Shown here in pieces: positions 5,113-31,877 of a stretch of DNA of 64,000 nucleotides. The notes beneath the pieces are model-generated. The model made no database searches. It had not been told where the DNA came from and was given only the letters and a program-made list of their open reading frames with translations. The position numbers and the translations under genes were made by a program. How positions within the stretch are numbered: position 1 is the stretch's first letter; each line of letters begins with the position of its first letter. The stretch lies in the sequence record PV231353.1; one strand, written 5' to 3'.

Positions 5113-5489
5113 TCACCCCCGTCCAGCAAATCCTCACCGACGCGGCCGTGCTGCTTGAAGAGCGCGGCTGGGGCCAGGGCAGCGACACGATCCGGACGGC
5201 CGATCTGGGCGGGGCGATGTGTCTCAACCTCGCCCTGGGCGCGGTCCACTCCGAAGAGATGGCGACCTTCCGCGCGGCCCAGTACGCCCTCATCAAACAT
5301 CTGGGCCTGGAGGTGGTCACCGAATATGACCGCTTCGCTGGCCTGACGCGTGAGATGCCGGGCGTGACCCTGGTCAACTGGAACGACGCGCCGGGCCGCA
5401 CCGCCCGCGAGGTGACCGACGCCCTGCGGGCGACCGCCCTGTCGGTGGTGGTCGACGCCCTGTCGGCGGCAGAAGAGGCCATGGCCTGA
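5109..5489 (+). CDS. conserved phage protein, WNDAPxRT family, paralogue 2
   Basis: TTG 5109; LLEERGWGQG...C..WNDAPGRTAREVTDALR. Confidence 0.8.
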   Translation: MITPVQQILTDAAVLLEERGWGQGSDTIRTADLGGAMCLNLALGAVHSEEMATFRAAQYALIKHLGLEVVTEYDRFAGLTREMPGVTLVNWNDAPGRTAREVTDALRATALSVVVDALSAAEEAMA

Positions 5490-17112: not shown

Positions 17113-18003
17113 ATGCCGCGCCTTTCCAACGATCGCCACGAGATGTACGCCCTGATGCGGGCCAAGGGCATGAAGCCGCAGGCCGCCGCCCAGGCCGCCG
17201 GCTTCGTGGCTGGCTCGTCGATCTACGCCGAACTGGAGAAGGACCCCGAGGTCCAGGCGCGCGCCCAGGAACTGCTCGACGAGAACAACCTCAAGCGCGA
17301 GCAGATGCGCACCGCCGCCACCGAGGCGGCCAAGGTCGTCGGTCAGGTCTCGGGCCTGTCCAAGGCCTGGGTGCTTCAGAAGCTGGCCGAGAACGCCCAG
17401 ATGGCGGCCCAGGACGGCGACTACAAGGAGAGCAACGCCGCCCTCAAGCTGATCGGCGACGAGTTCGGCATGTTCAGCGGCGCTTCCTCGGAAGGGACCG
17501 AGGGCCAGAACGGCGAGCGCGTCTACGATCTTGACGGGCTGAGCGCCCTCCTCGTCAAGGGGACCTCGGCGATCCCCGTGCCGCCGCCCAAGGTCGACCC
17601 GTCCGCCGCCTTCGACCTGATCGCCGGCAACGGGGCCGCCTCCCGCCGCGCCCGCGAGAGCCGGGCCTTCTCCGACGGCGAGGAAAGCGACGCGGTGTTC
17701 TCCGAGGACGCCGATGTCGACGCGGTCATGGACGGGGCCTGGAGCGGCCCCAGCCCCGACGACTACCTGGAGGCCGAAAATTCGCTCCAGGAGGCCCCTG
17801 AAGCCGCTGACCGACCCGAGCCCCCGGCCGACCCCGTTCCGGCCGCTGGCGACCCCGCGCAGGAGCCGGGAACCTGGGAGCAGATCGATCCCAAGACCTC
17901 CCCCGAAGCGATCATGGCGCGCATCCAGCCGCCGGCCAATCCCCGACTTCCAGCGATGACCGGCCCAAGCGCCGCTCCTCGCGCTGACCCTAGAACGCCG
18001 TGA
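17113..18003 (+). CDS. terS: terminase small subunit (probable); true stop may be 17987
   Basis: Directly upstream of TerL; N-terminal HE.YA..RAKG..PQAAA.AAGF TerS-like helix motif. Confidence 0.65.
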   Translation: MPRLSNDRHEMYALMRAKGMKPQAAAQAAGFVAGSSIYAELEKDPEVQARAQELLDENNLKREQMRTAATEAAKVVGQVSGLSKAWVLQKLAENAQMAAQDGDYKESNAALKLIGDEFGMFSGASSEGTEGQNGERVYDLDGLSALLVKGTSAIPVPPPKVDPSAAFDLIAGNGAASRRARESRAFSDGEESDAVFSEDADVDAVMDGAWSGPSPDDYLEAENSLQEAPEAADRPEPPADPVPAAGDPAQEPGTWEQIDPKTSPEAIMARIQPPANPRLPAMTGPSAAPRADPRTP

Positions 18004-20731
18004 GCTACTATCCGATCGAGGACCGCGCCAAGGCCCGGTCCGTCGTCAAGAACCTGCTGGACCTTCAGCGCGAGGCGGTCAAGGCCTCGCGCGGCGGCCT
18101 GATCCTGCCGCCCGACCAGAAGGCGATCATCACCCAGGTCACCGAGACCGAGGACCCGGCCCGCTGGGTCGACCTCCTGGGTCAGTTCGCCGATCGCGTC
18201 CAGACCGATCACCTCGCCCGGCTCAAGCCCCTGGCCAAGCACGACTTCAACGCCTTCTGCGAATACGTCAACCCCGAGGAGGCCCCGGCCTCCAAGTGGC
18301 ACGTCTACCTGACCTCGCTCCTCCAGGAGATCGAGAACAACCACGAGCTTGAGCGCTTCGTGCTCAACTGCCCGCCCGGTCACGCCAAGCCGCTCGACGT
18401 CGACACCGAGGTCCTGATGGCCGACGGGTCCTGGAAGCGCCTGGGCGACATCGAGGTCGGCGAATACGTGGTCGGCGAGAGCGGCGCGCGCTGCAAGGTC
18501 ACCGCCGTCCACGAGCAGGGCGAGCTTGCCACCCTGAAGATCACCACCGCCCACGGCCGCCAGATCATCGCCGCCCCCGATCACGCCTTCCGGGTCGGAA
18601 ACACCTGGAAGGAGGCGGGCAAGCTGCGGCCGGGCGATGCGCTGTCCGTGGTCGGCGCCGCCAACCTCAACTACGACGCCAGCGGCAAGACCATCGACCA
18701 CTTCGAGCTTGCCGCCTACCTCCAGGCCAAGGGCGGACGCTCCTACTTCCACCGCATCCACAAGAGCGGGCCGAAGACCTACCGCAACGTCTTCCTGTGG
18801 ACCTCCGACCACCGCGAGGCCAGCAAGATCAGCGCCTGCCTCAAGCGCCTGGGGATCGCCTTCAAGGGGCGCCTCGCCAAGCACGAGCAGGTCTGGAAGA
18901 TGCGGCTCGCCACCGAATGGGGCGACGCCCTGGCCGAGGAGTACGGCCTGGACGCGCGGATCGACGCGCGCCGGGTTCCGGCCTTTGTCACGAAAGGCGA
19001 CGAGGAGCAGATCGCCCGCTACCTGTCGACCTACACCTCTCTGGCCGGCGAGGCGCCCGACCGCTACACCATCCCGCGCATCATTCTCTACTTCAAGAAC
19101 CCGGCCTTCGCCCGCGACATCCAGCGCCTGTTCGCCGTGGTCGGCGTCAACGCCCGCATCGAGGGGCGCAAGACCGGCCGCACCCGGCTGATCCTGTCGG
19201 GGCCGGACCTGGAGGCCTACTTCGCCGCCGGCCTGACCTACACCGGCCCCAACGCCGACAAGCTCGACGACAAGCGCGCGGCCTTCCCGACCTCGCCCTC
19301 GCTCCTGGCCGACACCGTCACCTGGATCGAGCCGCACGGCGTGCGCCCCTGCCGCTGCCTGACCGTCGAGGACGAGCACACCTTCATCGCCGAAGGCGTG
19401 GTGGTCCACAACTCGACCTACGCCTCGCGCCTGTTCGTGGCGTGGCGCCTGGGGCGCGATCCGCGCCAGAAGATCATCGGCGGCGGCCACTCCCAGCGCT
19501 TCGTCGAGAACGAGTTCTCCGGCAAGATCTGCAACCTCGTGCGCACCCCGCAATATCGCGACGTCTTCCCCGACGTGGTCATCGACCACGCCACCTCGGC
19601 CAAGGACATGTGGGCGATCGCCGGGCACGGCGGGCAGTACGCCGCCAAGGGCGCCGGGCAGGCCATCCACGGTCTGCGCGCCCACTTCGTCTGCGTCGAC
19701 GACCCCTACCGGTCGATCGAAGTGGCCGAGTCCGCGATCGAGCGCGAGAAGATCAAGACGTGGTTCTTTGGTGACGTTGGCTCGCGTTTGTTGCCGCTCG
19801 CCAAAGTATTCCTCATCATGACGCGCTTCCACGAGGAAGATTTGACCGGGGAGATCATCAAACTCAACCAAGAAGTTCTCACCGGCGCCGACCGTTATCA
19901 CATCGTTGAAGCGCCCGCCCTGTGCTACGACCCCGAGAACGACGTCCTGGGCAGGGCTCTGGGCGAAGTTTTGTGGGACTACTATGACTTGCATTATTTC
20001 AAGCGCAAGCGGTCCGAGTGGAAGTACCAAAGATTTGCTTTGGTTTATCAACAACTTGCCGACGCGGCCTCGGACACCTCCATCGCGTCCAAGTTTCAGA
20101 CCTACGATCACCTCCCCCACCTGGAGCCGAAGGTGCTCAAGGCCCGGCTTGACGCGGGTCACGCCGACGAGCGCGGGCGGCCGATTCCGGACCGCAAGGA
20201 GCACTTCCGCCGGGTGGTGGTGAGCGTCGACTCGGCCAACAAGCCGGGGGCGCGGAACGACTACAGCGTGGCCCAGGTCTGGGGGAGACCCACGCTCGCA
20301 AGCACTACCTGATCTACCAGGAGCGCAAGAAGGTCGACATCACCGGCCTGACCGAGATGATCGAGCGGATCGCCAAGCGCTACGAGGTCGACGCCATCCT
20401 GGTCGAAGACAAGGGCAACGGCACCGCCTACATCCAGGCGCGGGGCCAGACCGACAGCCAGCGCCGGCTTGCCCCGGCCCCGATCGAGGCGATCCAGGTC
20501 CCGAGCACCTATTCCAAGGAGTTCCGCTTCAACGAGATCGTCCCGATGATCGAGGCCGGCGAGGTCTTCCTGCCGGGCAAGGCCCCGTGGCTCGACCTGC
20601 TGATCCGCGAAATCGGTCAGTTCCCCGAAGGCGCCCATGACGACCAAGTCGACGCCATGACGCAGTACCTCCGCTGGGCCAAGTCCAAGCGCACGCGGTT
20701 CGGCGCGCGCAAGGTCGGCTCGATGGGCTGA
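18000..20731 (+). CDS. terL: terminase large subunit with intein (apparent frameshift in G-run near 20285)
   Basis: Walker A PPGHAK|ST split by intein; IHGLRAHFVCVDDP Walker B; MTRFHEEDL; nuclease domain SVDSA...VEDKGNG...HDDQVDAMTQ. Confidence 0.95.
18390..19412 (+). mobile_element. 341-aa intein, class-3 type, with degenerate LAGLIDADG region
   Basis: PLDVDTEVLMADG...; block B DHAF; block F CRCLTV; ends VVVHN|S. Confidence 0.9.
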
Positions 20732-20802
20732 CGAGGCCCGTTAACCATGTTTGTTAACCTCCGCCGGGGCCTTAACCCTAACACGGCGAGGGTTAACAGG
20801 CC

Positions 20803-20959
20803 AGGGACCCTTCGAAATTAACCCTTCGGGGACCCTGGGAAATCGACAGACGGGGACCCTGGCCATTTTCCGGCTGGGGACCCTGCCAAATTCATCGCCG
20901 GGGACCCTCCGAAATTCATCTCTGGGGACCCTGGCGAATTCAGAGCCGGGGACCCTGGC
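20803..20959. repeat. 24-bp-period array of GGGGACCCT (7 copies)
   Basis: Cores at 20804, 20828, 20852, 20876, 20900, 20924, 20948. Confidence 0.9.
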
Positions 20960-20964
20960 GAATC

Positions 20965-21168
20965 ATGGAGCCGACGATGGCCGGATTTCTCAACCTGATC
21001 CCGAACCTCGCGCCGTTCGCGCTTTGGGGCGTCCTCCTCTGGATCGCCGCCGAGGTGGTCTGGAGCGTCTGCCTCTGGGTCTATGGCCTGCGGACCCTGT
21101 TCAAGCTGCACCGCGACGATCTGGCCGAGGCGATCAGCTTCGAGCGGGCGCTCAGCCCCTTCGACTAG
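20965..21168 (+). CDS. small membrane protein
   Basis: One long hydrophobic segment. Confidence 0.6.
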   Translation: MEPTMAGFLNLIPNLAPFALWGVLLWIAAEVVWSVCLWVYGLRTLFKLHRDDLAEAISFERALSPFD

Positions 21169-21184
21169 GCGCGGCCTGCCGACC

Positions 21185-21211
21185 TAAGTCACGGACTGTA
21201 GGTTTCGTGAC
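21185..21211. promoter_or_regulatory. AAGTCAY-N14-RTGAY palindromic site (copy 1 of 6)
   Basis: GTCAC-14-GTGAC; other copies at 21494, 30000, 51941, 52081, 58012. Confidence 0.7.
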
Positions 21212-21251
21212 AAGGTAGAATATTCCACAGCAAATTCAAAGGCTTATAGCC

Positions 21252-21488
21252 ATGCTGATCCACCGTCTCTTCCACGATCTGACCGTCCGTATCGTCGTTT
21301 TGGGGTGGATTTATGCCAAAAAGCCCCGAAAAACCGCTCCAAAAGGGCATAATTTTCAGCCGAATCCGCCGGCCCAGGCCGTCCAGTGGTACGGCGACGT
21401 GGTGCGCTCGTTCCTCGAATCGCTTGAGGCGCTCAAGCCGGCGCTCACGAAACGCGGCTGGCGTCAAGCCATCTCGACCACCGCCTGA
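21252..21488 (+). CDS. hypothetical protein
   Basis: 78 aa, weak SD. Confidence 0.5.
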   Translation: MLIHRLFHDLTVRIVVLGWIYAKKPRKTAPKGHNFQPNPPAQAVQWYGDVVRSFLESLEALKPALTKRGWRQAISTTA

Positions 21489-21561
21489 CCTAAGTCATAG
21501 ACCGTGGGCTTCGTGACAGGATCACGCTTTCGTTACCGCTCCAGCCCTTGTGAGGCCTCGG

Positions 21562-21666
21562 ATGTTCGCCTTTCTCCGCCGGCTCAGCCTCGCCGCCGTC
21601 CATGGCGCGCTCTGGGCGATCCTGCTGGCGATGGTCGCCGTGGGCGGGCCGCGCCGCGCGCCCTAA
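21562..21666 (+). CDS. 34-aa hydrophobic peptide
   Basis: GAGG SD; MFAFLRRLSLAAVHGALWAILLAMVAVGGPRRAP. Confidence 0.5.
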   Translation: MFAFLRRLSLAAVHGALWAILLAMVAVGGPRRAP

Positions 21667-21718
21667 AGCGCCATATCTGACGCATAAGGCCCTCTAAGGC
21701 CTCATCTGTGAGACATTC

Positions 21719-21754
21719 AACGCCCTCGTGTTCCTCTGAACGCGGGGGCGTTTT
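21719..21754 (+). terminator. intrinsic terminator
   Basis: AACGCCCTCGTGTTC-CTCT-GAACGCGGGGGCGTT then TT. Confidence 0.6.
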
Positions 21755-21862
21755 GACGTCGGCGCGTTTTCGACTTGACGCGCGAGCGTTTTGACGCGGG
21801 CGCATTTTTGATCTCGACGGGCGAGCGTTTTGACGTCCGCGCATTTTTCAACTTGACGTCGT
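21748..21862. repeat. three 38-39-bp tandem repeats rich in TTGACG
   Basis: GCGTTTTGACG units at 21748, 21786, 21825. Confidence 0.85.
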
Positions 21863-21881
21863 TTCATTTACCGGGAGCGCC

Positions 21882-22132
21882 TTAGGGTTAACGCCGGCCG
21901 CCGAGCCCTGGGGCGATTTACCACCGCCACGTTAACCTAACGCCTGTTAACCTATCGGTTGTTAAGGTTAACGCCCCGTTAGGGTTAACGCCCCTTAACC
22001 CTGCCCGCGTTAAGGTTAACACCCCGTTAAGGTTAACGCCGGGCGCGCCCAGGCCCTACCGGGCCATACCGGGTATGACCGGCCCTACCCGGCCCTACCG
22101 GTTAGGGTTAACGCCCCGTTAGGGTTAACGCC
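21882..22132. repeat. GTTAAC / CtrA-site cluster with 17-bp unit GTTA(A/G)GGTTAACGCCCC
   Basis: Nine GTTAAC; TTAA-N7-TTAA at 22016; TTAA-N7-TTAG at 21968 and 22108. Confidence 0.85.
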
Positions 22133-22137
22133 CGGCG

Positions 22138-22244
22138 AGCGCCCAGCCCCGCCGTAGCGCCCCTACGGTTCGAAGAGCCCAGCCCAGCCGGGTCCCGCCC
22201 GGCGACCCCTACACCCTAGAGGCTATTTCTTAACAAGAGGTAAA
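22138..22244 (-). ncRNA. candidate sRNA 1 from a leftward CtrA-type promoter
   Basis: Minus-strand TTTA-N7-TTAA-N11-TAGGGT; 54-nt core shared with 24102-24155. Confidence 0.45.
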
Positions 22245-22273
22245 CGCGAAAAAGATTCTGCGGCGGCGCGGCG

Positions 22274-22352
22274 TTTACTTTTTGTTAAGACTTTGCGCCC
22301 ATAGTCCCCCTTGTCCCCGCCGCATCCCGCGCCGGGCAAGGAGCTTCCCGCC
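22274..22352 (+). promoter_or_regulatory. CtrA-box early promoter and hairpin leader (first of 12 forward copies)
   Basis: TTTA-N7-TTAA-N11-CATAGT; other boxes at 22563, 23659, 24236, 24697, 25275, 25868, 27062, 28217, 30181, 30770, 31243. Confidence 0.8.
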
Positions 22353-22538
22353 ATGATCCCCGACTCGATCATGAACCCCCGCGACCATTTCCACCGTCTG
22401 CGCGAGGAAACCGCCCGCGCTCTGGTCGAGGCCTTCGCCGAAACCGACCCCGGCGAGGATTACCGCGCCGAAGAGAAGGCCGGCGCTTGGGTTGTCGCCT
22501 ATTACGACGCGGCGGGCGAATTCGTCGCCTATCTCTAA
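22353..22538 (+). CDS. early hypothetical protein
   Basis: AAGGAG SD behind CtrA promoter. Confidence 0.75.
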   Translation: MIPDSIMNPRDHFHRLREETARALVEAFAETDPGEDYRAEEKAGAWVVAYYDAAGEFVAYL

Positions 22539-22637
22539 CCGCCTTCGCCCCCTGGCGCCGCGTTAACGGTTTGTTAACATGTTGGCGCCAGGGTCGCCCT
22601 AGCCCGGCGCGTCGCCGCGCCTTCGGAGAAAAACGCC

Positions 22638-23441
22638 ATGCTCTACACCCCCGCCGCCCGCCGCCTTCGCGGCTATCGCGAAACCGCCGCGAAGAACGCC
22701 GAAATTCACGCCCGCCCGCACATGGCCGACAACGTCGCCGGCTACAACGAGTCGGTGTGGCCGACGACGGCGCTAGGCGTCGCCGCCAAGGCCGGCGCCT
22801 TCAAGCGCCCCGAAACCGCTGGCAACTGGTCGGAAGATCGCAAAGCCTATTACGCCCCCGCGTGGCCGGCCGGCTGGCGCGTGCTAGGCACGGCGCAAGA
22901 GGTTTGCCACAAGGAAGGATCGCGCCGGGTCGACCATTCCGGATGGTACACGACGCCCGACGACTACAGCGCCACGCTTTCGGGCTATGTGCTGCAAATC
23001 CCCGCCCGCGACGGCCGCCCGCAATACGTCGCCGGGACCGCCCATAGTGAATGGGACGGGGTGACCCTCTATCCCGCCGACCGCTACGACAACCCGCTTG
23101 ACGCGGCGAGCGCCGCCGACCGTCACGCCGAACGCGACGCCGAAGAGGAACGCGAATATCAAACCGCGTGGCAAGCGGGCGTGCGCTACGCCGAACTCGG
23201 AGCCGAAGCCAAGGAGGCCCGCAAGGAAGCGCTGGCGATCCTCGCCGAACGCCGCAAGGTCAAGGGGCTGGAAACCCCCGCCTTGTGCGGCGCGATCCGG
23301 GCGCAGGTCGAGGCCCTGCTAAGCCGGATCGAAGAGGCGCGCGCCTCGCGCGCCAAGCTCAAGGAAGGCGAGGACTCGCGCCTCATGTTCTACCCGTCCG
23401 CCGCCATGGTCGCGGCCTTCAATGACGGCGCGGCGTCGTGA
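22638..23441 (+). CDS. early hypothetical protein
   Basis: GWY...GYVLQIP...Y.AG...AAD..AE..AEEEREY. Confidence 0.8.
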   Translation: MLYTPAARRLRGYRETAAKNAEIHARPHMADNVAGYNESVWPTTALGVAAKAGAFKRPETAGNWSEDRKAYYAPAWPAGWRVLGTAQEVCHKEGSRRVDHSGWYTTPDDYSATLSGYVLQIPARDGRPQYVAGTAHSEWDGVTLYPADRYDNPLDAASAADRHAERDAEEEREYQTAWQAGVRYAELGAEAKEARKEALAILAERRKVKGLETPALCGAIRAQVEALLSRIEEARASRAKLKEGEDSRLMFYPSAAMVAAFNDGAAS

Positions 23442-23628
23442 AGGTCGCCCGCGATAGCTTCGCCGTGTTCTGGACCCTCCCGCAAGGCGGGGTCAATTTC
23501 ATGCAGACATGAAACGGGCGCTCTACCCGACCGCCCGCGACGCCGCCCGCGCCTTCCGCGCCATGTTCCCCCGTGACCGGGTCAAGAGCGTCCGCGACGC
23601 GTCCGGGCGGTTTCTCGCCTTCCGCTAG
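23438..23628 (+). CDS. small early protein (apparent frameshift near 23500)
   Basis: VKVARDSFAVFW...NF joins (H)ADMKRALYPTAR...FR*. Confidence 0.5.
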
Positions 23629-23737
23629 GCCAGAGCGCCCCGGACCTTTTCCGGGGCGTTTACTCTTTGTTAAGACTTTGAGCCCATAGTCCCCTTGTCG
23701 CCGGGCAATCCCGCCCGGCGCTTTGTAGGATCGCCCC

Positions 23738-24031
23738 ATGTCGCACGTCTACGACATAGAATATACCGACACTTTCGCGGGGGAGGCTAATTATTCATGG
23801 ATTCGCCGCGCGGCCGTGACCATGCCGGAATTGACCCATTATGGGTACGATGGCGGGTCTAACTACGCCAAGGCTAACCGCGTATTTAACCGCGAACTCA
23901 TGAGGCGCGCCAAGGCCGCCATGGGCTTGACGGGGGTGCGCGGCGTCTCCGCCGCGCATGGCGACAATCTCGAATTTCGCCCGCACCGGTCCGCGACAAT
24001 CCTTTTTGTGACCTACCGCGACGCGGACTAG
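23738..24031 (+). CDS. early conserved phage protein
   Basis: YTDTFAGEANYSWIRR...EFRP. Confidence 0.8.
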   Translation: MSHVYDIEYTDTFAGEANYSWIRRAAVTMPELTHYGYDGGSNYAKANRVFNRELMRRAKAAMGLTGVRGVSAAHGDNLEFRPHRSATILFVTYRDAD

Positions 24032-24101
24032 GCCAGAGCCCGGCGCCGTCCCTTGGCGCCGGGCGTCACGCTTGCCGGACGCGTTAACCATGTTTTTGAA
24101 A

Positions 24102-24206
24102 AGCGCCCAGCCCCGCCGTAGCGCCCCTACGGTTCGAAGAGCCCGGCCCAGCCGGCTCCGCCGGCTACGGGATCAATCTAGCGCCAAAGTCTTAACAAGA
24201 GGTAAA
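24102..24206 (-). ncRNA. candidate sRNA 2 from a leftward CtrA-type promoter
   Basis: Minus-strand TTTA-N7-TTAA-N11-TAGATT; shared 54-nt core. Confidence 0.45.
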
Positions 24207-24315
24207 CGCCAGCGCCCGGCGATATCTTTTTCACGTTTACGTTTTGTTAAGACTTTGGCGGATAGTGTTCCCTTGCCGCCGGGCAATCCCGCCCCGCCGC
24301 TTGGAGCTTGCCGAC

Positions 24316-24699
24316 ATGGGGAAAACCCTGTTCCGCGAAATGGCCAAGGTCGCCGCCCCGGTGATCACCGCCTATCATGCCGACCTAGAAATTCATGACC
24401 GCAAGGTCATTGAAGGCCTGAAGGCCGGTGACGTCATCCTTTGGGCGCCCGACAAGGCCGGGACGACTCTTATCGTCCTGGCCCGCCAAGGCCGCCCCAA
24501 TCACCGCGCCGCCGAACACTTCGAGGCCGCCCAATGTCGCCAGCCCCCGGCGTGGTATCTGGCCAGCGTGTCGCACAATGGCGAGGCCGGGCAATGGCAA
24601 TTTGGCCCCGCCCCGGACGCCCCCGCCATCGTCGCCCGCTGGGCGGAGCAAGCCGCCCGCGATACCGCCCCGGACCCGGTGCGCGAGCTTCACCTGTAA
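24316..24699 (+). CDS. early hypothetical protein
   Basis: GGAG SD behind CtrA promoter. Confidence 0.75.
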   Translation: MGKTLFREMAKVAAPVITAYHADLEIHDRKVIEGLKAGDVILWAPDKAGTTLIVLARQGRPNHRAAEHFEAAQCRQPPAWYLASVSHNGEAGQWQFGPAPDAPAIVARWAEQAARDTAPDPVRELHL

Positions 24700-24759
24700 A
24701 CCTTTTGTTAAGGCCTCGCCGCTACGGTGGCGAGGTCAAACAACCAAGGAGCGCCGACC

Positions 24760-24957
24760 ATGGCCCCGCGAGGCGATACAGGCGAAGCCATGACCAAGGT
24801 CATAAGCCTAGACCTAGACAAGGCCACGGCCGAAGCCGTGAGCGAAGCGCTCGCCCATGTCTGGCGTGAAATATACGATCGCGAGCGCCGGGGCCAGGGC
24901 GGCAAGCTTCGCGCCGTGCTGGACAAGCTCAACACCGTTACCGACGCCCGCCGCTAA
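24760..24957 (+). CDS. early hypothetical protein
   Basis: AAGGAG SD. Confidence 0.65.
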   Translation: MAPRGDTGEAMTKVISLDLDKATAEAVSEALAHVWREIYDRERRGQGGKLRAVLDKLNTVTDARR

Positions 24958-24970
24958 AGGAGTCCAAGCC

Positions 24971-25243
24971 ATGCGCTACAACGTCAACGGGACCGGTTTT
25001 AAGGGCGGCTCCGCCCCGGCCGTCCCCGCCCAAGGCCTGACCGGTCACGCCGACGCCGCCGGCCTTTGGGTTCCCTCGCGCGAGCATATCGCCGCCATGC
25101 TCCCGCAACGCTGGCGCCACGCCTTCGCCCGCGCTTCGTTTTGGTATGACGCCCGCGACAACAAAAAGCCGTGCCGCGCCGACCTCTACGACTCGCGCGG
25201 CCGGTACCTGACTCAGGTCTGGGCGCATCCGGTTTTCAGCTAG
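24971..25243 (+). CDS. early hypothetical protein
   Basis: AAGGAG SD; FWYD...PCRADLY. Confidence 0.75.
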   Translation: MRYNVNGTGFKGGSAPAVPAQGLTGHADAAGLWVPSREHIAAMLPQRWRHAFARASFWYDARDNKKPCRADLYDSRGRYLTQVWAHPVFS

Positions 25244-25355
25244 GCCAGGACGCCCCGGAAAATCTTCCGGGGCGTTTACCTTTTGTTAACCTCTGGCCTC
25301 TAGGGTGACTTTCGCCGCCGGGCAATCCCGCCCGCCGCTTCGGAGTTTCGGCCCC

Positions 25356-25871
25356 ATGCCGCAATTCGTTCTTGATACCTCCGGCCAAGTCGCCCCGCCC
25401 GCTTCGGCCAAGCTTTGGCCGCATCCGCTGCGCTGGAATCAACTGAGCCCCTTCGCCCAAGGCTATATCGAGGCCCTGTTTTTCACTGAAAGCGCGCCGG
25501 GCGTGACCTCGCGCCAGTTCATGACCAAGGCCTATCAAAAGCGCCTCGAAAGCGGCGAGGCGGACGGCGCCTTGCCGGGCGACGTCGGCTTTTCCGACCT
25601 CGCGCCCGACACTCTCAACGCGATCTTGAACGATTGCGGGCGCTTCCAACGCGACAACGCCGACGCCCTGGCCAAGGCCTATGACCACGGGGGCGACTCG
25701 GGCGACTACGACGAGGCCGCCGCCGGCCGGGATTATTGGTACACCCGCAACGGCCATGGCGTCGGGTTTTGGGATCGCGGACTCGGCGAGATTGGCGAGG
25801 CCCTGGCCAGCGCCGCCCGCTACAGCGAACGTTACGCGACGTTTTACAACGGTAAAGTTCACCTCGATTAA
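25356..25871 (+). CDS. early conserved phage protein
   Basis: GYIEALFFT...DC..F...AGRDYWYTRNGHGVGFWDR. Confidence 0.8.
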   Translation: MPQFVLDTSGQVAPPASAKLWPHPLRWNQLSPFAQGYIEALFFTESAPGVTSRQFMTKAYQKRLESGEADGALPGDVGFSDLAPDTLNAILNDCGRFQRDNADALAKAYDHGGDSGDYDEAAAGRDYWYTRNGHGVGFWDRGLGEIGEALASAARYSERYATFYNGKVHLD

Positions 25872-25954
25872 GCTTTTGTTAAGACTTGTCCTCTAGGTTT
25901 GACTTCGCCGCCGGGCAATCCCGCCCGGCGGTCCTCTTCTCAGGATCGCCCCTT

Positions 25955-27006
25955 ATGACCTCTCATTCCATGGTTGCGCACCGTTGGGCGCAGGACGACG
26001 AGAACGGCCGCACCGCGCGCGGCTTCAACATGTATTTCGAGCGCTACGGGCGCGGCGCCGACCGCGTCAACGTGATTTTTCCTACGGGACTCACTTCCCG
26101 GCCGCCGCCTTCGTGACCGACGCGCACGGCCGCCGCGTGGTTCTCTACACGACGCACCGCCGGAGCATTTCGACCGCGAAACACCTTTCCCACATCCGCC
26201 ACGCGATTCCGTCGGGCGTGCCGGTGTTTTCCGTGCCGAACGTGTCGCGGATGCACAAGCCGGGCGGCGCGGGCGACTTCCACGGGGACAACCTGCGCGC
26301 CTATATCGAGAGCGCCGCCGGCCTCGCCGAAAAGGCCAAGCGCGCCCGCGTCAACGGCCCTTGGCTGCTTAGCCAAGCCCGCGACCAACTCGCCGAAGCC
26401 GCCCGTTACGCCGACGCCTTCAAGGTCAAGGGCTTCAAGGTTCCGGCCTTGGAAGACGTCGCCGGCCAATGGGCGAAGATGACGGCCGCCAAGGCGCGGG
26501 CCGAAGCCAAGGCCCGCAAGGAAGCCGAAAAGGCCGCCCGCGAACGCCGCGAAGCCGAACGGATCGCCGACGCCGAAGCCTTCGCCGCATGGATGCGCGG
26601 CGAGCGCCAGAGCGCCCCGTTTAGCTACCGGGTGCGCGATGACGGGACCGTCTATCTTCGCCGTTTCCGGGGCGTGGTCCGCGACCTGCGCAGCCAAGCG
26701 CGCGACGGCTCGCGCGTCGATGAGCTGCAAACCTCGCAAGGCGCGGCCGTGCCGTGGGAACACGCGGTCAAGGCCTTCCGGTTCATTAAGCTTTGCCGCG
26801 AACGCGGCGAGAGCTTCCACCGCAACGGCCGGGTGATCCGCGTTGGTCACTTCCAAGTTGACGCGATCGGCGCCAACGGGGACATGACGGCCGGGTGCCA
26901 CCGGTTCGCGTGGGATGAAATTGAACGCCTCGCCAGGGCCGAAGGGGTTTTCGACCTCCCCGCCGACGCCGGCGCCGTCGAAACCCGGCAAGCCGAACCG
27001 GCCTAA
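25955..27006 (+). CDS. early hypothetical protein (apparent frameshift in T-run near 26078)
   Basis: MTSHSMVAH.WA...IF joins SYGTHF...; C-terminal TSQGA.VP...GHFQVD.I..NGD..AGCH. Confidence 0.75.
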
Positions 27007-27141
27007 GCCCGCCCGACCCTCCAGCGCCCCGGCTCCCCGCCGGGGCGCTTTCGTGTACGCGGTAACCTTTTGTTAACTTCTGGCCTCTAGGGTGACTTTC
27101 GCCGCCGGGCAATCCCGCCCGCCGGCCAAGGATCGCAGACC

Positions 27142-27440
27142 ATGAATCTTTTCGTTGTCGCCATTGACCCCGCCCTCATCCCTTCGGCCGCCGGCTTCGT
27201 GGTCGCCTCCCCTACGGGTGCGGCAAGTGGCGCGCGTGCGTCGGGAGCGAGGCGGACATGATCGCGCTTCGCGACAAGATGCGCCGCGCGCACCCGGCCC
27301 CGGAAGGCTACAGCGTCCAGCCCCTGGCGTCGTTCCTGGCCTATCTCGAAACGGTCGGGGATAGCCCCTATGACCAGTTTCGCGCCCGCGACGCCGCCGC
27401 CCGCATCCTTGACACCCTGACAACGCACCTCGCCGCCTAG
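27142..27440 (+). CDS. early hypothetical protein (apparent frameshift in C-run near 27210)
   Basis: AAGGA SD; MNLFVVAID... joins YGCGKW...MIALRD. Confidence 0.6.
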
Positions 27441-27494
27441 TCCCGCCGCCCCCGGCCGCGCGCCGGGGCGCTTTCCTCGAAAGGATCGCCGACC

Positions 27495-27797
27495 ATGACA
27501 ACCCGTCTTATCGCCGTGCGCGGCCCGACCGCCGCCGAACTCGCCGACCCGTCCAGCCGCGCGGGCGGCGCCGAAGTCGTTTTCGAGCGCCGCGACCGCG
27601 AAGGCCACACGCGCCTTGTGTTCGCCGCGACCTGCTACGGGTCATATCAGCAATGGGGCGAAACCCGCGACGTGCTCGCCGACAACGTCGAGGCGGTCAC
27701 GCTCTGGGCCGAAGGCATGGCGGCCGTTGCCGCCCTCATCGACGAGAGCGACGACGACGAGGGCGACGACGCCCCGGCCGACGACGGGGAGGCGTGA
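27495..27797 (+). CDS. early hypothetical protein, acidic tail
   Basis: AAGGA SD. Confidence 0.75.
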   Translation: MTTRLIAVRGPTAAELADPSSRAGGAEVVFERRDREGHTRLVFAATCYGSYQQWGETRDVLADNVEAVTLWAEGMAAVAALIDESDDDEGDDAPADDGEA

Positions 27798-27800
27798 GCC

Positions 27801-28220
27801 ATGCGCACAACCAAGGCTCAACGCTTCGCCGCCATCGCCTTTGACGCCCTGGCCAAGGCCCTAAGCGAGCCGCGCCAAGCCGTCGCCCGCATGACCAAAT
27901 GGGAGGGGGCGGGCCATAGCTTCGCCAACCTGCAACGCGATTATGAGCGGTACGGCCCCGGCGCCCGCTCATGGTTTGGCCGGGCTGAAATGCGCTTCTT
28001 TGGGACGCGCCTTGAGGCCGCGCCGCTGGACTTCCCGGCGCTGGGCTGCACCCTGTTTCTGACCTCCGAAACCCCGCCCGGCGCCGGCCGGGTCTGGACC
28101 CTTCGCGCCTATGTCTGGGCTTCGGCCGATATCACTACGCTAACCCATGGCGACGAAACCGACGCGGCGACCGCGCAAGCGGCCTTTGACCTCTTATGGC
28201 GGGTCCTTTCCGGGCGGTAA
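27801..28220 (+). CDS. early hypothetical protein
   Basis: WF...EMRFFG.RL. Confidence 0.75.
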   Translation: MRTTKAQRFAAIAFDALAKALSEPRQAVARMTKWEGAGHSFANLQRDYERYGPGARSWFGRAEMRFFGTRLEAAPLDFPALGCTLFLTSETPPGAGRVWTLRAYVWASADITTLTHGDETDAATAQAAFDLLWRVLSGR

Positions 28221-28296
28221 CCTTTTGTTAACTTCTGCCCGCTAGGGTCTTCTTGCGGCCGGGCAATCCCGCCCGGCCGCCCAAGGATTGGATCGC

Positions 28297-28569
28297 ATGA
28301 CCCGCGCTCAAGCCCTCGCCCAAATGAACGCCCTTCCCGGTATCATCGCCTCCTTTGAGCGCGAGACGGGCGAATATCGCGTGACCCTGCGCTTTGGCCC
28401 GCTCCCCATGGGGCGCGGCGCCCAAGAGTGGATGCGCGCGCGCCGCGAAGCCGTCGCCAGCTACAGCGACGACAAGGCCGACGCCCTGGCCACCGCCCGC
28501 GACATGTCCGCCCGTTGGGAGGCGATGAGCGCCGAACAACGCGCCCGCCTCTATCACAACCCCGCCTAA
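28297..28569 (+). CDS. early hypothetical protein
   Basis: Behind CtrA promoter 28217. Confidence 0.75.
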   Translation: MTRAQALAQMNALPGIIASFERETGEYRVTLRFGPLPMGRGAQEWMRARREAVASYSDDKADALATARDMSARWEAMSAEQRARLYHNPA

Positions 28570-28636
28570 AGCCCCGCGCGCCGCCCTGGCCTTCGCCGGG
28601 GCGGCTCCCTTAAACCCCTCGCAAGGATCGCACCCC

Positions 28637-28930
28637 ATGACCGCCAAGTCCGCCCGCAAGCCCCTGACCAAGGAACAAAAGACCCGCCGCCGCGAAACCC
28701 GCCGCGCCGCCCGCCTCAACTGGTCGGATGAGCGCCGCGCCCGCGAATTCGAGCGTCAAGCCCGCTTCTTCCTGATGATCGCCACCCGCGCCCAAGGCGC
28801 CGGCCAAGGCCAGGAAGCCGCCCGCCTCGCCACGGTCGCACAACGCAAGGTGACCAACTGGCGCATGGCGCAGGCCTGCGCCCGGATTAACGCCCTGGCC
28901 GCGCATCCGTTCGCGGCCGTGGTCGCCTAA
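28637..28930 (+). CDS. basic early hypothetical protein
   Basis: AAGGA SD, Arg-rich. Confidence 0.7.
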   Translation: MTAKSARKPLTKEQKTRRRETRRAARLNWSDERRAREFERQARFFLMIATRAQGAGQGQEAARLATVAQRKVTNWRMAQACARINALAAHPFAAVVA

Positions 28931-28943
28931 GGAGGCCCCGCCC

Positions 28944-29126
28944 ATGACGCACCCTCACGCCCTGGCGCTGATCGCCCTCGCTGAAAAGGTGTTGCCGCTT
29001 ACCCGGCTGCACCCGCTCGACCAACGCGCCGCCGCCGTCGATCTAATCGGCGACCTCTACCGCCTCGCCGACGATATCGACGCGGCCCCGCAAGCCCCCG
29101 CCCTGGCGCAACCGAAGGCCGCCTAA
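28944..29126 (+). CDS. early hypothetical protein
   Basis: AAGGAGG SD. Confidence 0.7.
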   Translation: MTHPHALALIALAEKVLPLTRLHPLDQRAAAVDLIGDLYRLADDIDAAPQAPALAQPKAA

Positions 29127-29127
29127 C

Positions 29128-29433
29128 GTGACCGCCCTCCAACGCGCCGGTTTCGCTGCGCACCGTCGCGGCGTCAAATGGTGGAACAACCCGCATCGGG
29201 CCGGTTCCCCCGCCGCCTATCAATGGGACCAAGGCCACACCCTCGCCCGCCGCGACGCCGAACAAGCCGCGCTCGACGCCTTGGAGGCCGCCGACTTGGC
29301 CCCCGAACCGGGCGAGGTGATCACCGAAGCCTTGCGCCCCTATCTGGGCGCCGCCCTGGCCGAAAACCACGCCGACGACGTGCTAGACGCCCTCACGCGC
29401 GCCGGCTTCCAAATCACCCGCAAGGAGGCCTAA
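29128..29433 (+). CDS. early hypothetical protein
   Basis: GTG directly after upstream stop. Confidence 0.65.
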   Translation: MTALQRAGFAAHRRGVKWWNNPHRAGSPAAYQWDQGHTLARRDAEQAALDALEAADLAPEPGEVITEALRPYLGAALAENHADDVLDALTRAGFQITRKEA

Positions 29434-29438
29434 AGCCC

Positions 29439-29999
29439 ATGACCGACTCCGCCAAGATCACCGGCGCGCTCGCGCTACTCGCCGTCGCGGCCGATAATCT
29501 CCGCCAAGGCCCGGCCATGTCCAAAGCCGCCGACAACGTCACCAACGTCTGTAACTACGCCCTGACGCGCGCCGTCATGCTCAAAGCCGCCGACCAAATC
29601 GGCGAGGCGCTGGGCGCCCTGCAAACGGGCGGCTATGTGATCGCCCGCCGTCGCGATGTCTTCACCGATGAGGGCGAGAAGCTGGGCGACCTGTTGGCGG
29701 CGCTTTATGACGCCGTCCCGAACTACGCCGTAAGATCGCAGCGGCTCGCCGACGCCCTGGCCCCGGCGCGAGATTACGTCTATCAGCCCCGGTTCCGGGT
29801 CAAGCTGGACGCCGCGCCCGGCGCGCTCTTGACCGACTGCGACACGGGCGCAACGGTCTATTTCCAGCCGGGCGACGACGCCGACGCCTTCCGGGCCGAA
29901 TTCGCCCCGTGGGTTCACGCCGCCAACGTGACGGCCGAAGGCGCGGCCCTGGCCTCGATGATGAACCCGACCGCCGAAGAGTATTTCAGCCCCGCCTAA
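29439..29999 (+). CDS. early hypothetical protein
   Basis: AAGGAGG SD. Confidence 0.75.
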   Translation: MTDSAKITGALALLAVAADNLRQGPAMSKAADNVTNVCNYALTRAVMLKAADQIGEALGALQTGGYVIARRRDVFTDEGEKLGDLLAALYDAVPNYAVRSQRLADALAPARDYVYQPRFRVKLDAAPGALLTDCDTGATVYFQPGDDADAFRAEFAPWVHAANVTAEGAALASMMNPTAEEYFSPA

Positions 30000-30109
30000 G
30001 TCATCATTCCTACCGTCTATGACTTGTCACCGGCCGAAGTCTTACCCGGTGACAGTCTGGGCAAGTAAAGCTCACTCTGGATTTTATGACTTAGCGCAAA
30101 GGATTGAAT

Positions 30110-30184
30110 TTGCTCGAAAAATTCCTAGAAGCTCACAAAGTCGTTTTCTGGCTGCTCTTGCTGGCCTGTTTGTGGCGCTTTTAA
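30110..30184 (+). CDS. 24-aa hydrophobic peptide (not in ORF track)
   Basis: AAGGA SD, TTG start; MLEKFLEAHKVVFWLLLLACLWRF. Confidence 0.45.
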   Translation: MLEKFLEAHKVVFWLLLLACLWRF

Positions 30185-30265
30185 CGGTTTGTTAACCCCT
30201 GGCCCTCTAGGGTCGAATTCCCGGCGCGGCAATCCCGCCGCCCGGCCTTCCTTCGGAGCTTCCTA

Positions 30266-30712
30266 ATGTTCGCTTCCGTGACCCTTCCCGCCCATGACGC
30301 CCAAGGCCTGAGCCTCGAAACCGTCCACATGGTTTTCGCCCGTGAACTGGCGCAACACTTCGAGCACGTAATTTCCGCCCCCGTGATCGAAAGCTGGACC
30401 GACGAGGAAACCGGCGCCGTGCAAGAGCAAGCCGCCGTTTGCTTCACCGTTTCGGCGACCCCGGCCGCGTGGGAAGCCAAGGGCGGCCGGCTCGCGCGCC
30501 GGCTGGAAAACCTCGCCGCGCGCTATGCCGCCGACTGCGACGCCCCGGCCCTGACTGTCACCCATTGCGACGGGCAAACGGTCTATGTCGGCGCTCTGGA
30601 AGCCCTGGCGCGCCCCGCCCCGGTGCAAGGCCCGACCCGCGCGGCGGACCCGGCTTTCCTCCCCCGCCAGCGTGAAGACAAGGCCGCCCGCTTCGATCGC
30701 CTGACCGCCTAG
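30266..30712 (+). CDS. early hypothetical protein
   Basis: Behind CtrA promoter 30181. Confidence 0.75.
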   Translation: MFASVTLPAHDAQGLSLETVHMVFARELAQHFEHVISAPVIESWTDEETGAVQEQAAVCFTVSATPAAWEAKGGRLARRLENLAARYAADCDAPALTVTHCDGQTVYVGALEALARPAPVQGPTRAADPAFLPRQREDKAARFDRLTA

Positions 30713-30730
30713 CCCCTGGCCTCCCCTAGC

Positions 30731-30759
30731 GCACCGCCCCTAGAAAGGCGGTGCGCTTT
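30731..30759 (+). terminator. intrinsic terminator
   Basis: GCACCGCC-loop-GGCGGTGC then GCTTTT. Confidence 0.65.
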
Positions 30760-30853
30760 TCTGTGTCTGTTTACTTGTTGTTAAGGAATAGCCTGCTAGT
30801 GTCTCCTTGTCGGCGGACGCATCCCGCGCCCGCCCCTTTCTGGATCGCTTCCC

Positions 30854-31246
30854 ATGGCTCGCCCCTCTGACCTGCTCAACGTCAACGCCGCCCGCGTCCT
30901 GGCTTGCCTTGAGCCTATCGCCGCCGCCGCTAAGACGGCCCCGGCCGCCGACCGCGCCGCCCTTTCCTACCTGCTCGACGCTGGCGAGTATGTCGCCGCG
31001 TGGCGCCGCAACCTCACGGAAACCGACCGCCGCAAGGCCTATGGCGCGGCCTGCGCCGCCGAAGCCCTGGCGCTCGCCAACGCCTATCAGCCCGCCACCC
31101 TGCAAGGCGGCGCCGTCCGCCGCGCTCTGGGCGCCTATGCCGCCGCCCTTAAGGTCCTGCTAGACGGGGAGCCGGTTAAGGCGGTCCGCGCCGCCGAAGG
31201 CGCGGCGCTTTCGGTCCGCGCTCGCTACGCCAACACCCGCCTTTAA
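30854..31246 (+). CDS. early hypothetical protein
   Basis: Behind CtrA promoter 30770. Confidence 0.75.
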   Translation: MARPSDLLNVNAARVLACLEPIAAAAKTAPAADRAALSYLLDAGEYVAAWRRNLTETDRRKAYGAACAAEALALANAYQPATLQGGAVRRALGAYAAALKVLLDGEPVKAVRAAEGAALSVRARYANTRL

Positions 31247-31300
31247 CCTCTTGTTAACACCTCCCGGCTATGGTCGGGAGGTCGCAAGGAGACACCCGAC

Positions 31301-31495
31301 ATGACCCGCCCCGGCCCCGCCTCGCTCTTGACCCCGCAAGCCCGTTTCTCGTCGCCGCGCGTCCTGATCCTTCCGGGCGCGGCTCCCATGCCGATTCGCC
31401 AGCCGCGCGGCCTTTGCGCCGTCGAGTGCGTCGCCCTTGGCGTGACGCTGGGCGCGGCGCTCTACCTCGCCGCCCGCGTGTTCGGTCTGGTCTGA
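31301..31495 (+). CDS. small membrane protein
   Basis: AAGGAG SD; C-terminal TM segment. Confidence 0.6.
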   Translation: MTRPGPASLLTPQARFSSPRVLILPGAAPMPIRQPRGLCAVECVALGVTLGAALYLAARVFGLV

Positions 31496-31877
31496 CCAGA
31501 CCCCCGCCCCGCCCCCGGTCGGACCGGTCGGGGGTGTGTCCCATAATGACACACCCCCGCCACCTAGTATCTTTTTTGATTCGGAGGGACCCAAAGGCCC
31601 CCTACGTTAACCATTTTGGCGGCGCCCCCGGCGCCTACGGATCATTTTGAAAAATCGCGTTGACAAAACCAGCGATCAACGTCAAGGATCGTGACGTCGA
31701 GCAGCCCCGCCCGACACGGGCGGCCCGCCCCCATTCGCCGCCCGACGGCCCCATCTCCGACGTCCACCGGGGGTGGGGCCTTTTCATTTTCCAGCCAGGG
31801 GACCCAAGGCCCCCTGGCTTTGTAAATCGGACCGCCAAAAGGTCCCTCCAAAAATTTTCAAAACCAGAAACGCCCGG

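Follow-up and report, generated by a model that had tools for sequence, protein, structure and literature searches.

The 64,000-nucleotide stretch of DNA analysed here (the window) corresponds to positions 62001-126000 of the 208,414-bp record of Caulobacter phage RBC57 (PV231353.1), with which a 6.5-kb query around the repeat array described below is 100% identical. With the same query, phiCbK, Karma, and Swift show 95-96% identity and the Rogue-type phages about 80%; RBC57 is a phiCbK-like jumbo siphophage. Coordinates are those of the window, and the terminase genes, the array, the elements around it, and the two genome ends all refer to the plus strand. The terS gene (17113-18003), assigned on the basis of the annotation of relatives and of profile matches, codes for a small terminase subunit with an SF6/SPP1 G1P-type N-terminal helix-turn-helix; specifically, the profile of its N-terminal 80 amino acids matches solved small terminases, namely Pam5 TerS (3e-16), 4zc3, 3zqp, and 2cmp, while the search for a Pfam match to TerS returned none. 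The adjoining terL gene (18000-20731), identified by homology, codes for an intein-containing large terminase and is split in the RBC57 record into two open reading frames (18000-20312 and 20357-20731) by a missing G after position 20280. Since the extra G is found in 4/4 public sequencing runs and in all the relatives, the split reflects either a sequencing or assembly error or a frameshift specific to the record; the site is part of the terminal repeat.

Past the duplicated 3' portion of terL, the first non-coding stretch harbors an array of seven 24-bp units (20803-20971), each composed of a GGGACCC core followed by T-N4-AWTT and delineated from the sequence and from its relatives. The cores start at 20804, 20829, 20853, 20877, 20901, 20925, and 20949, with one spacing of 25 bp followed by five of 24 bp, and occupy an intergenic position (20804-20955) between the terL stop codon and a small open reading frame. 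The exact 9-mer GGGGACCCT is found at six of the cores (20828-20948) and Tandem Repeats Finder reports a 24-bp array of 5.7 copies (20827-20963), so that the seven cores, six of them at an exact 24-bp period, noted in an earlier reading of the letters without database searches (hereafter the sequence-only reading), are confirmed. Across the whole 208,414-bp record, six of the seven exact copies of GGGGACCCT fall in the array, and neither the 9-mer on the other strand nor a reversed control pattern yields any match; this census and the conservation in relatives rule out an array arisen by chance.

Downstream, the small hydrophobic open reading frame (20977-21168), homologous to phiCbK gp001/gp319, has a ribosome-binding site that overlaps the last array unit, although in Colossus and in L025 the element does not include this reading frame; searches of the small open reading frames against Pfam returned no matches. 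An inverted-repeat promoter-like element (GTCAC ... CGTGACAAGG) occurs twice upstream of the small open reading frames, at 21186-21215 and 21492-21520, and looks like a phage early promoter; similar elements (TTGTCA ... CGTGACAAG) are present 3' of terL in L150, L151, and L025. A large gene-less region (21690-22340) contains three further repeat families, consisting of a 39-bp unit in three copies (21740-21858), GTTARGGTTAACGCCCC in about eight copies (21931-22133), and GGCCCTACCG in about five copies (22052-22101); Colossus (L034, 1300-1800) has its arrays in the same order, as do L150 and L151 in part.

The RNA-seq contigs of infected cells span terL, the array, and the following sequence up to about 21741, skip positions 21742-22303, part of which (to about 22020-22167) is covered by the DNA runs, and resume at 22304; hence, the array appears to be co-transcribed with terL and the small open reading frames. 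Transcription does not argue against a function of the array at the DNA level. A scan for sigma-70-like promoters in 20500-22700, of a kind that excludes the Caulobacter and phage promoter types, found none. The presence of the array in RNA, an open reading frame that reads through it (20751-21218), and the possibility that adjacent cores pair with each other, CCC with GGG, could point to a translated peptide repeat or to a structured RNA repeat. Nevertheless, the relatives carry a 1-nt insertion after 20800, no reading frame survives unit lengths of 21-34 nt, the spacers vary without constraint around an invariant core, and pairing between units stops at the palindromic core. The pattern of indels and the lack of conserved pairing rule out translation and RNA structure, leaving these readings a negligible probability; conservation of a translated array at the protein level, named in the sequence-only reading as an outcome that would overturn its interpretation, is at odds with a frame broken by indels.

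Four TTAAC sites precede the cores (20741, 20754, 20772, and 20793; overall 20741-20797), as had been described, and are conserved in relatives. The first of them reads TTAACCAT, which we take to be the consensus of the CtrA half-site, and the third and the fourth form an inverted repeat, TTAACCCT-N9-AGGGTTAA; the arrays of Colossus, Bajun, and RXM have pairs of TTAAC sites in front of them as well. A test for the CtrA box TTAA-N7-TTAA failed at the array, where the spacing is N9 for 20741/20754 and N17 for 20772/20793, and a canonical N7 CtrA-type site is located near 22563. CtrA-type sites are enriched in the terminal repeats of phiCbK phages (Mascolo et al. 2022, PMC9437464), and the sites adjacent to the array match this enrichment, though with a spacing of N9 instead of the canonical N7.

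The genomes of phiCbK-like phages have non-permuted direct terminal repeats of 10-17 kb (Gill et al. 2012, PMC3556154), and the RBC57 record is deposited with the repeat collapsed. The ends of phiCbK were mapped experimentally through the ligation of oligonucleotide tags and a two-fold step in coverage, which placed the left end at codon 652 of terL and the right end in the non-coding DNA between genes 20 and 21, with packaging inferred to start at the left end (Gill et al., PMC3556154). The 60-nt sequence of the phiCbK left boundary matches the window with two mismatches at 19924-19983, placing by homology the left physical end of RBC57 within terL, between 19953 and 19954, and the match of the final 40 nt of the phiCbK repeat to 31591-31630 places the right end between 31629 and 31630. 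These matches set the terminal repeat of RBC57 at about 11.7 kb (19954-31629) by homology. In the DNA run X1, the contigs (Logan) located entirely inside the repeat have a depth of 23-27x compared to 11x for a contig located mostly outside, a difference of about 2.4-fold that is consistent with a doubled repeat, the position of the step not being resolvable from these contigs. The array is therefore enclosed by the terminal repeat, at 850-1000 nt from the left end as positioned by homology to the mapped ends of phiCbK. The sequence-only reading had placed the array beside a terminal repeat of about 10 kb that starts after it: the long terminal repeat and the proximity of the array to one physical end hold, whereas the repeat is longer and begins upstream of the array, which it includes.

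Two minor features are found around the left end. The 10-mer CGACCCCGAG (19929-19938; L043, 5470-5479) is located inside terL, 15-24 nt before the left cut, in both RBC57 and phiCbK, and 6-15 nt past the annotated left end in Colossus and CcrPW; it may contribute to the left cut signal or be there by chance. Moreover, the contigs of the RNA run X4 break at 19748-19777, about 180-200 nt before the left end, where the mean depth rises from 175 to 282, which may reflect a transcript boundary, carry-over DNA, or an effect of assembly.

At the opposite end of the repeat, a right-end block (31586-31629), defined by homology and from relatives, comprises a single GGGACCC, AAAGGCC, TTAACCAT, a T run, and a GC-rich stretch that extends to the cut. 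Its core at 31586 is 44 nt inside the right end of RBC57 as determined by homology. A further GGGGACCC core (31799), recognised from the sequence, is contained in a hairpin (31793-31821) about 170 nt outside the right end, and its position is kept in phiCbK, Rogue, and BL57 despite the differing flanks of Rogue. The far-side elements previously listed as GGGACCC at 31586 and 31798, a hairpin, and an inverted GGTCCC at about 31840 are all present (31586, 31799, 31793-31821, and about 31841). Judged within the 64-kb window, these far-side cores are not significant: outside the array, GGGACCC is found four times in the forward and five times in the reverse orientation, and the count with one mismatch equals the expectation from shuffling (25 found, 27 expected). 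Their reality is instead established by conservation in relatives.

Specifically, a core at -44/-45 from the right end is shared by RBC57, phiCbK, Karma, Swift, Magneto, Rogue, BL10, RBC63, BL57, CcrSC, and CcrPW, bearing out the claim that the array is echoed at the other boundary. The final 45 nt of the repeat are nearly identical in the first eight of these phages (RBC57, phiCbK, Karma, Swift, Magneto, Rogue, BL10, and RBC63), with diverged flanks in Rogue. CcrSC, which has a 23.9-kb repeat and shares almost nothing else, carries the core at -44 from its annotated end and the same GGCGCCTA 3' of the cut; the records of BL57 and CcrPW stop 44-45 nt past the core, and in RB23 the core is at -38 from the annotated end. 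The annotated ends of CcrSC, RB23, BL57, and CcrPW were possibly set by homology, in which case the box-to-end distances in these phages are not independent. Bajun, Bambus, and BL9 each have a single copy of the 13-mer GGGACCCAA(A)GGC(C) per unit genome, and CcrPW has one in each copy of the terminal repeat, while in BL57 the 13-mer occurs in the end copies and at +183, outside the end. Homologous single-copy blocks are present in Colossus, BL9, Bajun, and Bambus. The block of Bajun lies about 16.7 kb after the expected left end, and that of Colossus (17,194-17,245, L050) lies about 430-480 nt beyond an annotated right end that is fuzzy and derived from a drop in coverage (16,589-16,764), so that the true right end of Colossus may be near 17,238. 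Neither the array nor the right-end block was found in the complete 225-kb genome L151.

The conservation of the array extends well beyond the close relatives of RBC57. In nine of the latter, neither the core nor the period changes, while the spacers have drifted and 6-7 copies are present, so that the conservation of the period, which had been proposed as a check, is borne out. More broadly, an array located 3' of terL on the same strand is present in about 26 lineages of phages of Caulobacter, Brevundimonas, Sphingobium, and Citromicrobium and of metagenomic phages; the isolates include Colossus, CcrPW, CcrSC, BL9, RB23, and BL57, as well as Bajun, Gurke, and Bambus of Brevundimonas, Lacusarx of Sphingobium, and RXM of Citromicrobium. 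The arrays consist of 5-9 boxes, placed where non-coding DNA first occurs past the left end of the repeat. The consensus of the unit, obtained from 136 units of 26 lineages, is C-R-GGGACCC-T-N4-A-W-T-T, in which the columns of the core are invariant by construction of the search and the flanking columns are not so constrained, and 70% of 110 unit intervals measure 23-25 nt. Colossus has one full unit outside its left end, at a distance of 59 nt, and the array inside, at 355 nt. The double-coverage region of Lacusarx, of about 10.5 kb, starts directly after terL (PMC5648845). Moreover, the terminal repeats of these phages otherwise have about 1-12% nucleotide identity to that of phiCbK (Mascolo et al., PMC9437464), and the persistence of the box in repeats that share so little indicates that it is selectively retained.

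The association with terL holds in both directions of the search. Pattern-only scans of IMG/VR also returned many unrelated simple repeats; the non-simple arrays on contigs with a clear TerL relative (at least 35% identity to the query TerLs) are all located 3-2500 bp after the terL stop codon and on the same strand, and in L058 and L066, which have weak TerL matches only, a GGGACCC cluster is found upstream and on the other strand. Conversely, among 80 loci fetched by TerL alone, arrays are present in most of the close TerL relatives and in 0 of about 60 more distant ones. Within the close TerL clade, the array is missing in L150, L151, and L159/L160, and it is also missing in the Ruegeria phages RpAliso and DSS3P8; barring these exceptions, it is conserved with, and restricted to, phages that share the terminase. 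Two adjacent bipartite units were found in none of the 185,579 bacterial genomes scanned, which rules out a host regulatory array and makes a host factor less likely as the binder of the units.

An alternative function of the units would be that of boundary or insulator sites, at which a phage or host transcription factor bound to the array and to the right-end box would block or regulate read-through from the late to the early region and beyond. Boxes are found at each of the two borders of the early block: the array separates the last gene of the late group from the first promoters of early type (at about 21186 and 21492), in a region crossed by continuous RNA-seq contigs, and the right-end core is directly 3' of a terminator-like hairpin and a T run, with the core at +170 enclosed in another hairpin. 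Such a role leaves unexplained the fixed distance of 44-45 nt to the physical end and the conserved sequence between core and cut, and is further weakened by the negative sigma-70 scan around the array. A host factor with chromosomal targets is disfavored by the bacterial genome scan, and TgrL, the early XRE factor of phiCbK, is rejected as the binder of the boxes given that its ChIP motif differs. As a whole, boundary sites are an unlikely explanation.

The architecture of the units, that is, direct repeats with a period of 22-24 bp and an internal dyad, also recalls the iterons of a replication origin or of a machinery that duplicates the repeat, in which an initiator would oligomerise on 5-9 direct repeats beside an easily melted stretch. 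The iterons of lambda and of plasmids are similar direct repeats with an internal dyad. An A+T-rich stretch is indeed present directly 3' of the array in Colossus, CcrPW, and L025, but in RBC57 and in the phiCbK group the array abuts the small open reading frame instead. Furthermore, no initiator gene was identified nearby, iterons would leave unexplained why one box keeps a constant distance to the right end, and the replication module is distant (PMC3556154) and of the T7 type. Iterons are quite unlikely.

A different function could be exerted upon entry of the DNA into the cell. In T5, repeat-rich DNA is located at the inner end of the first-step-transfer DNA, and the array might likewise lie at the inner end of the repeat that enters first and halt entry once the early genes are in. 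Packaging from the left end, if correct (Gill et al., PMC3556154), would imply that the right repeat is ejected first, the array is positioned just beyond the leftmost early promoters, and the phiCbK phages encode a homologue of T5 A1. However, this homologue is encoded outside the repeat, two-step transfer is unreported for phiCbK, the outer right-end box would have no role, and the mode of action of the T5 signal is itself unproven, all of which makes an ejection pause improbable.

The reading that best accommodates the position of the units at both ends is that they are recognition boxes for the terminase, with the array at the start of packaging and the single box before the termination cut. 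We assign it a probability of about one half; it agrees with the terminase or TerS recognition signals put forward in the sequence-only reading. The TerS encoded at 17113-18003 is the obvious candidate for the binding of the boxes on positional grounds. According to the proposed mechanism, a ring-shaped small terminase of the SF6/G1P type would assemble on the array in the concatemer, with the 23-25-bp period setting the successive boxes along the path of the DNA wrapped on the oligomer. The array-bound TerS would position TerL for the left cut, 0.35-1.9 kb behind, and the DNA would be pumped rightwards. After a full genome and the next repeat, the single box and the adjoining block would arrest or re-position the enzyme, and the right cut would occur 44 nt further on.

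Several observations stand against this assignment. The left cut and the array are separated by variable lengths (355, about 850, and about 1944 nt), a spread that greatly exceeds that of lambda cosB or SPP1 pac, and in Colossus the block lies about 430-480 nt past the annotated fuzzy right end. Packaging and other boundary roles are also inseparable by position, since the genome ends where the late operon borders on the early region. Besides, the helix-turn-helix of TerS is 20-57% identical among the phages that bear the array, and the array-less L151 keeps the same invariant residues, so that no co-variation between TerS and the box is evident.

The proposed boxes share features with several known systems. 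As in the pac site of SPP1 and SF6 (pacL, pacR), short boxes are repeated near the start of packaging, on the side that is packaged first, and RBC57 TerS has the G1P-type N-terminal DNA-binding domain. The SPP1 pac site, in contrast, is inside terS and is cut between two clusters of boxes within about 100 bp, whereas the RBC57 array follows terL and the phiCbK-type cut is 0.35-1.9 kb away; SPP1 packages by headful with no sequence-specific termination, while in the phiCbK type a second precise cut accompanies the single box. In lambda cos, the R sites of cosB are repeated terminase-binding sites downstream of the start cut, and cosQ is a separate termination element just upstream of the cut, as the -44 box would be. 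Lambda, however, employs one nick site for both ends and has 12-nt cohesive ends, in contrast to two cut sites about 11.7 kb apart and a long direct repeat, and the sequence of the box and its 24-bp period are unrelated. The kind of signal thus resembles SPP1 pacL/pacR and lambda cosB/cosQ and differs in the two distant cut sites, in the location of the array after terL, and in the fixed offset of 44-45 nt.

T7, which has short repeats (SRL/SRR) close to a direct terminal repeat and non-permuted ends, was the analogy chosen in the sequence-only reading, and it fails on position. The T7 repeats, for which we know of no established function, flank a 160-bp repeat on the outside and on both sides, whereas in RBC57 the array is inside the left end only, a single box is inside the right end, and one core is outside. 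The 24-bp period near a genome end also recalls the p6 protein of phi29 and suggests DNA wrapped on a protein multimer. Protein p6 recognises the bendability of DNA rather than a conserved 7-mer, such as that of the RBC57 array, and serves protein-primed replication. To our knowledge, there is no settled mechanism for the recognition of two cut sites with the duplication of 10-25 kb, a strategy of T5, SPO1, phiCbK, and many jumbo phages, and no defined recognition sequence for the phiCbK class of terminases.

The CtrA-type sites described in phiCbK occupy the same region, and TTAAC and TTAACCAT are found beside the array and in the right-end block; that study, however, deals with TTAA-N7-TTAA sites and the regulation of early genes and describes no GGGACCC boxes (Mascolo et al. 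2022, PMC9437464). The GGGACCC array and the right-end block are described neither in Gill 2012 nor in Mascolo 2022, nor were they retrieved by a full-text literature search, which also returned no paper that pairs GGGACCC with a phage terminase. The long repeats with their ends (Gill 2012) and the enrichment in CtrA sites (Mascolo 2022) were already known, and the array and the right-end block are apparently new.

A broader and rather doubtful proposal is that one box, GGGACCC, specifies both ends of the long repeats across this clade of alphaproteobacterial jumbo siphophages, with the array nucleating the terminase, the single box ruling the cut 44-45 nt downstream, and TTAACCAT possibly recruiting CtrA as an accessory factor, as IHF in lambda. 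If true, the recruitment of CtrA would tie genome packaging to the host cell cycle. The candidate signal is short, conserved, easily mutated, and present at both ends and, with its fixed box-to-cut distance, makes the question of end recognition directly testable. Moreover, it would allow the ends of relatives with collapsed repeats to be predicted from sequence only: a repeat of about 16.7 kb is expected in Bajun, and the right end of Colossus is predicted near 17,238 rather than at 16.6-16.8 kb.

Lastly, two phages display divergent units after terL. In the array-less L151, the position equivalent to that of the array, at about 5300-5400 (550-650 nt after the terL stop codon), holds two to three GAAAT-GTCCGGA units spaced by about 24 nt, and TGTCCGG occurs seven times within 3.9 kb after terL; these units may be a replacement box. 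In Microcystis phage Mwe-JY26 (L234), whose recorded host is a cyanobacterium, the TerL is related and two units are located 307-345 nt past the terL stop codon. Their cores are in opposite orientation, GGGTCCC followed by GGGACCC, and both are flanked by T-N4-GAWTT, an arrangement suggesting that the middle base of the core is not read.
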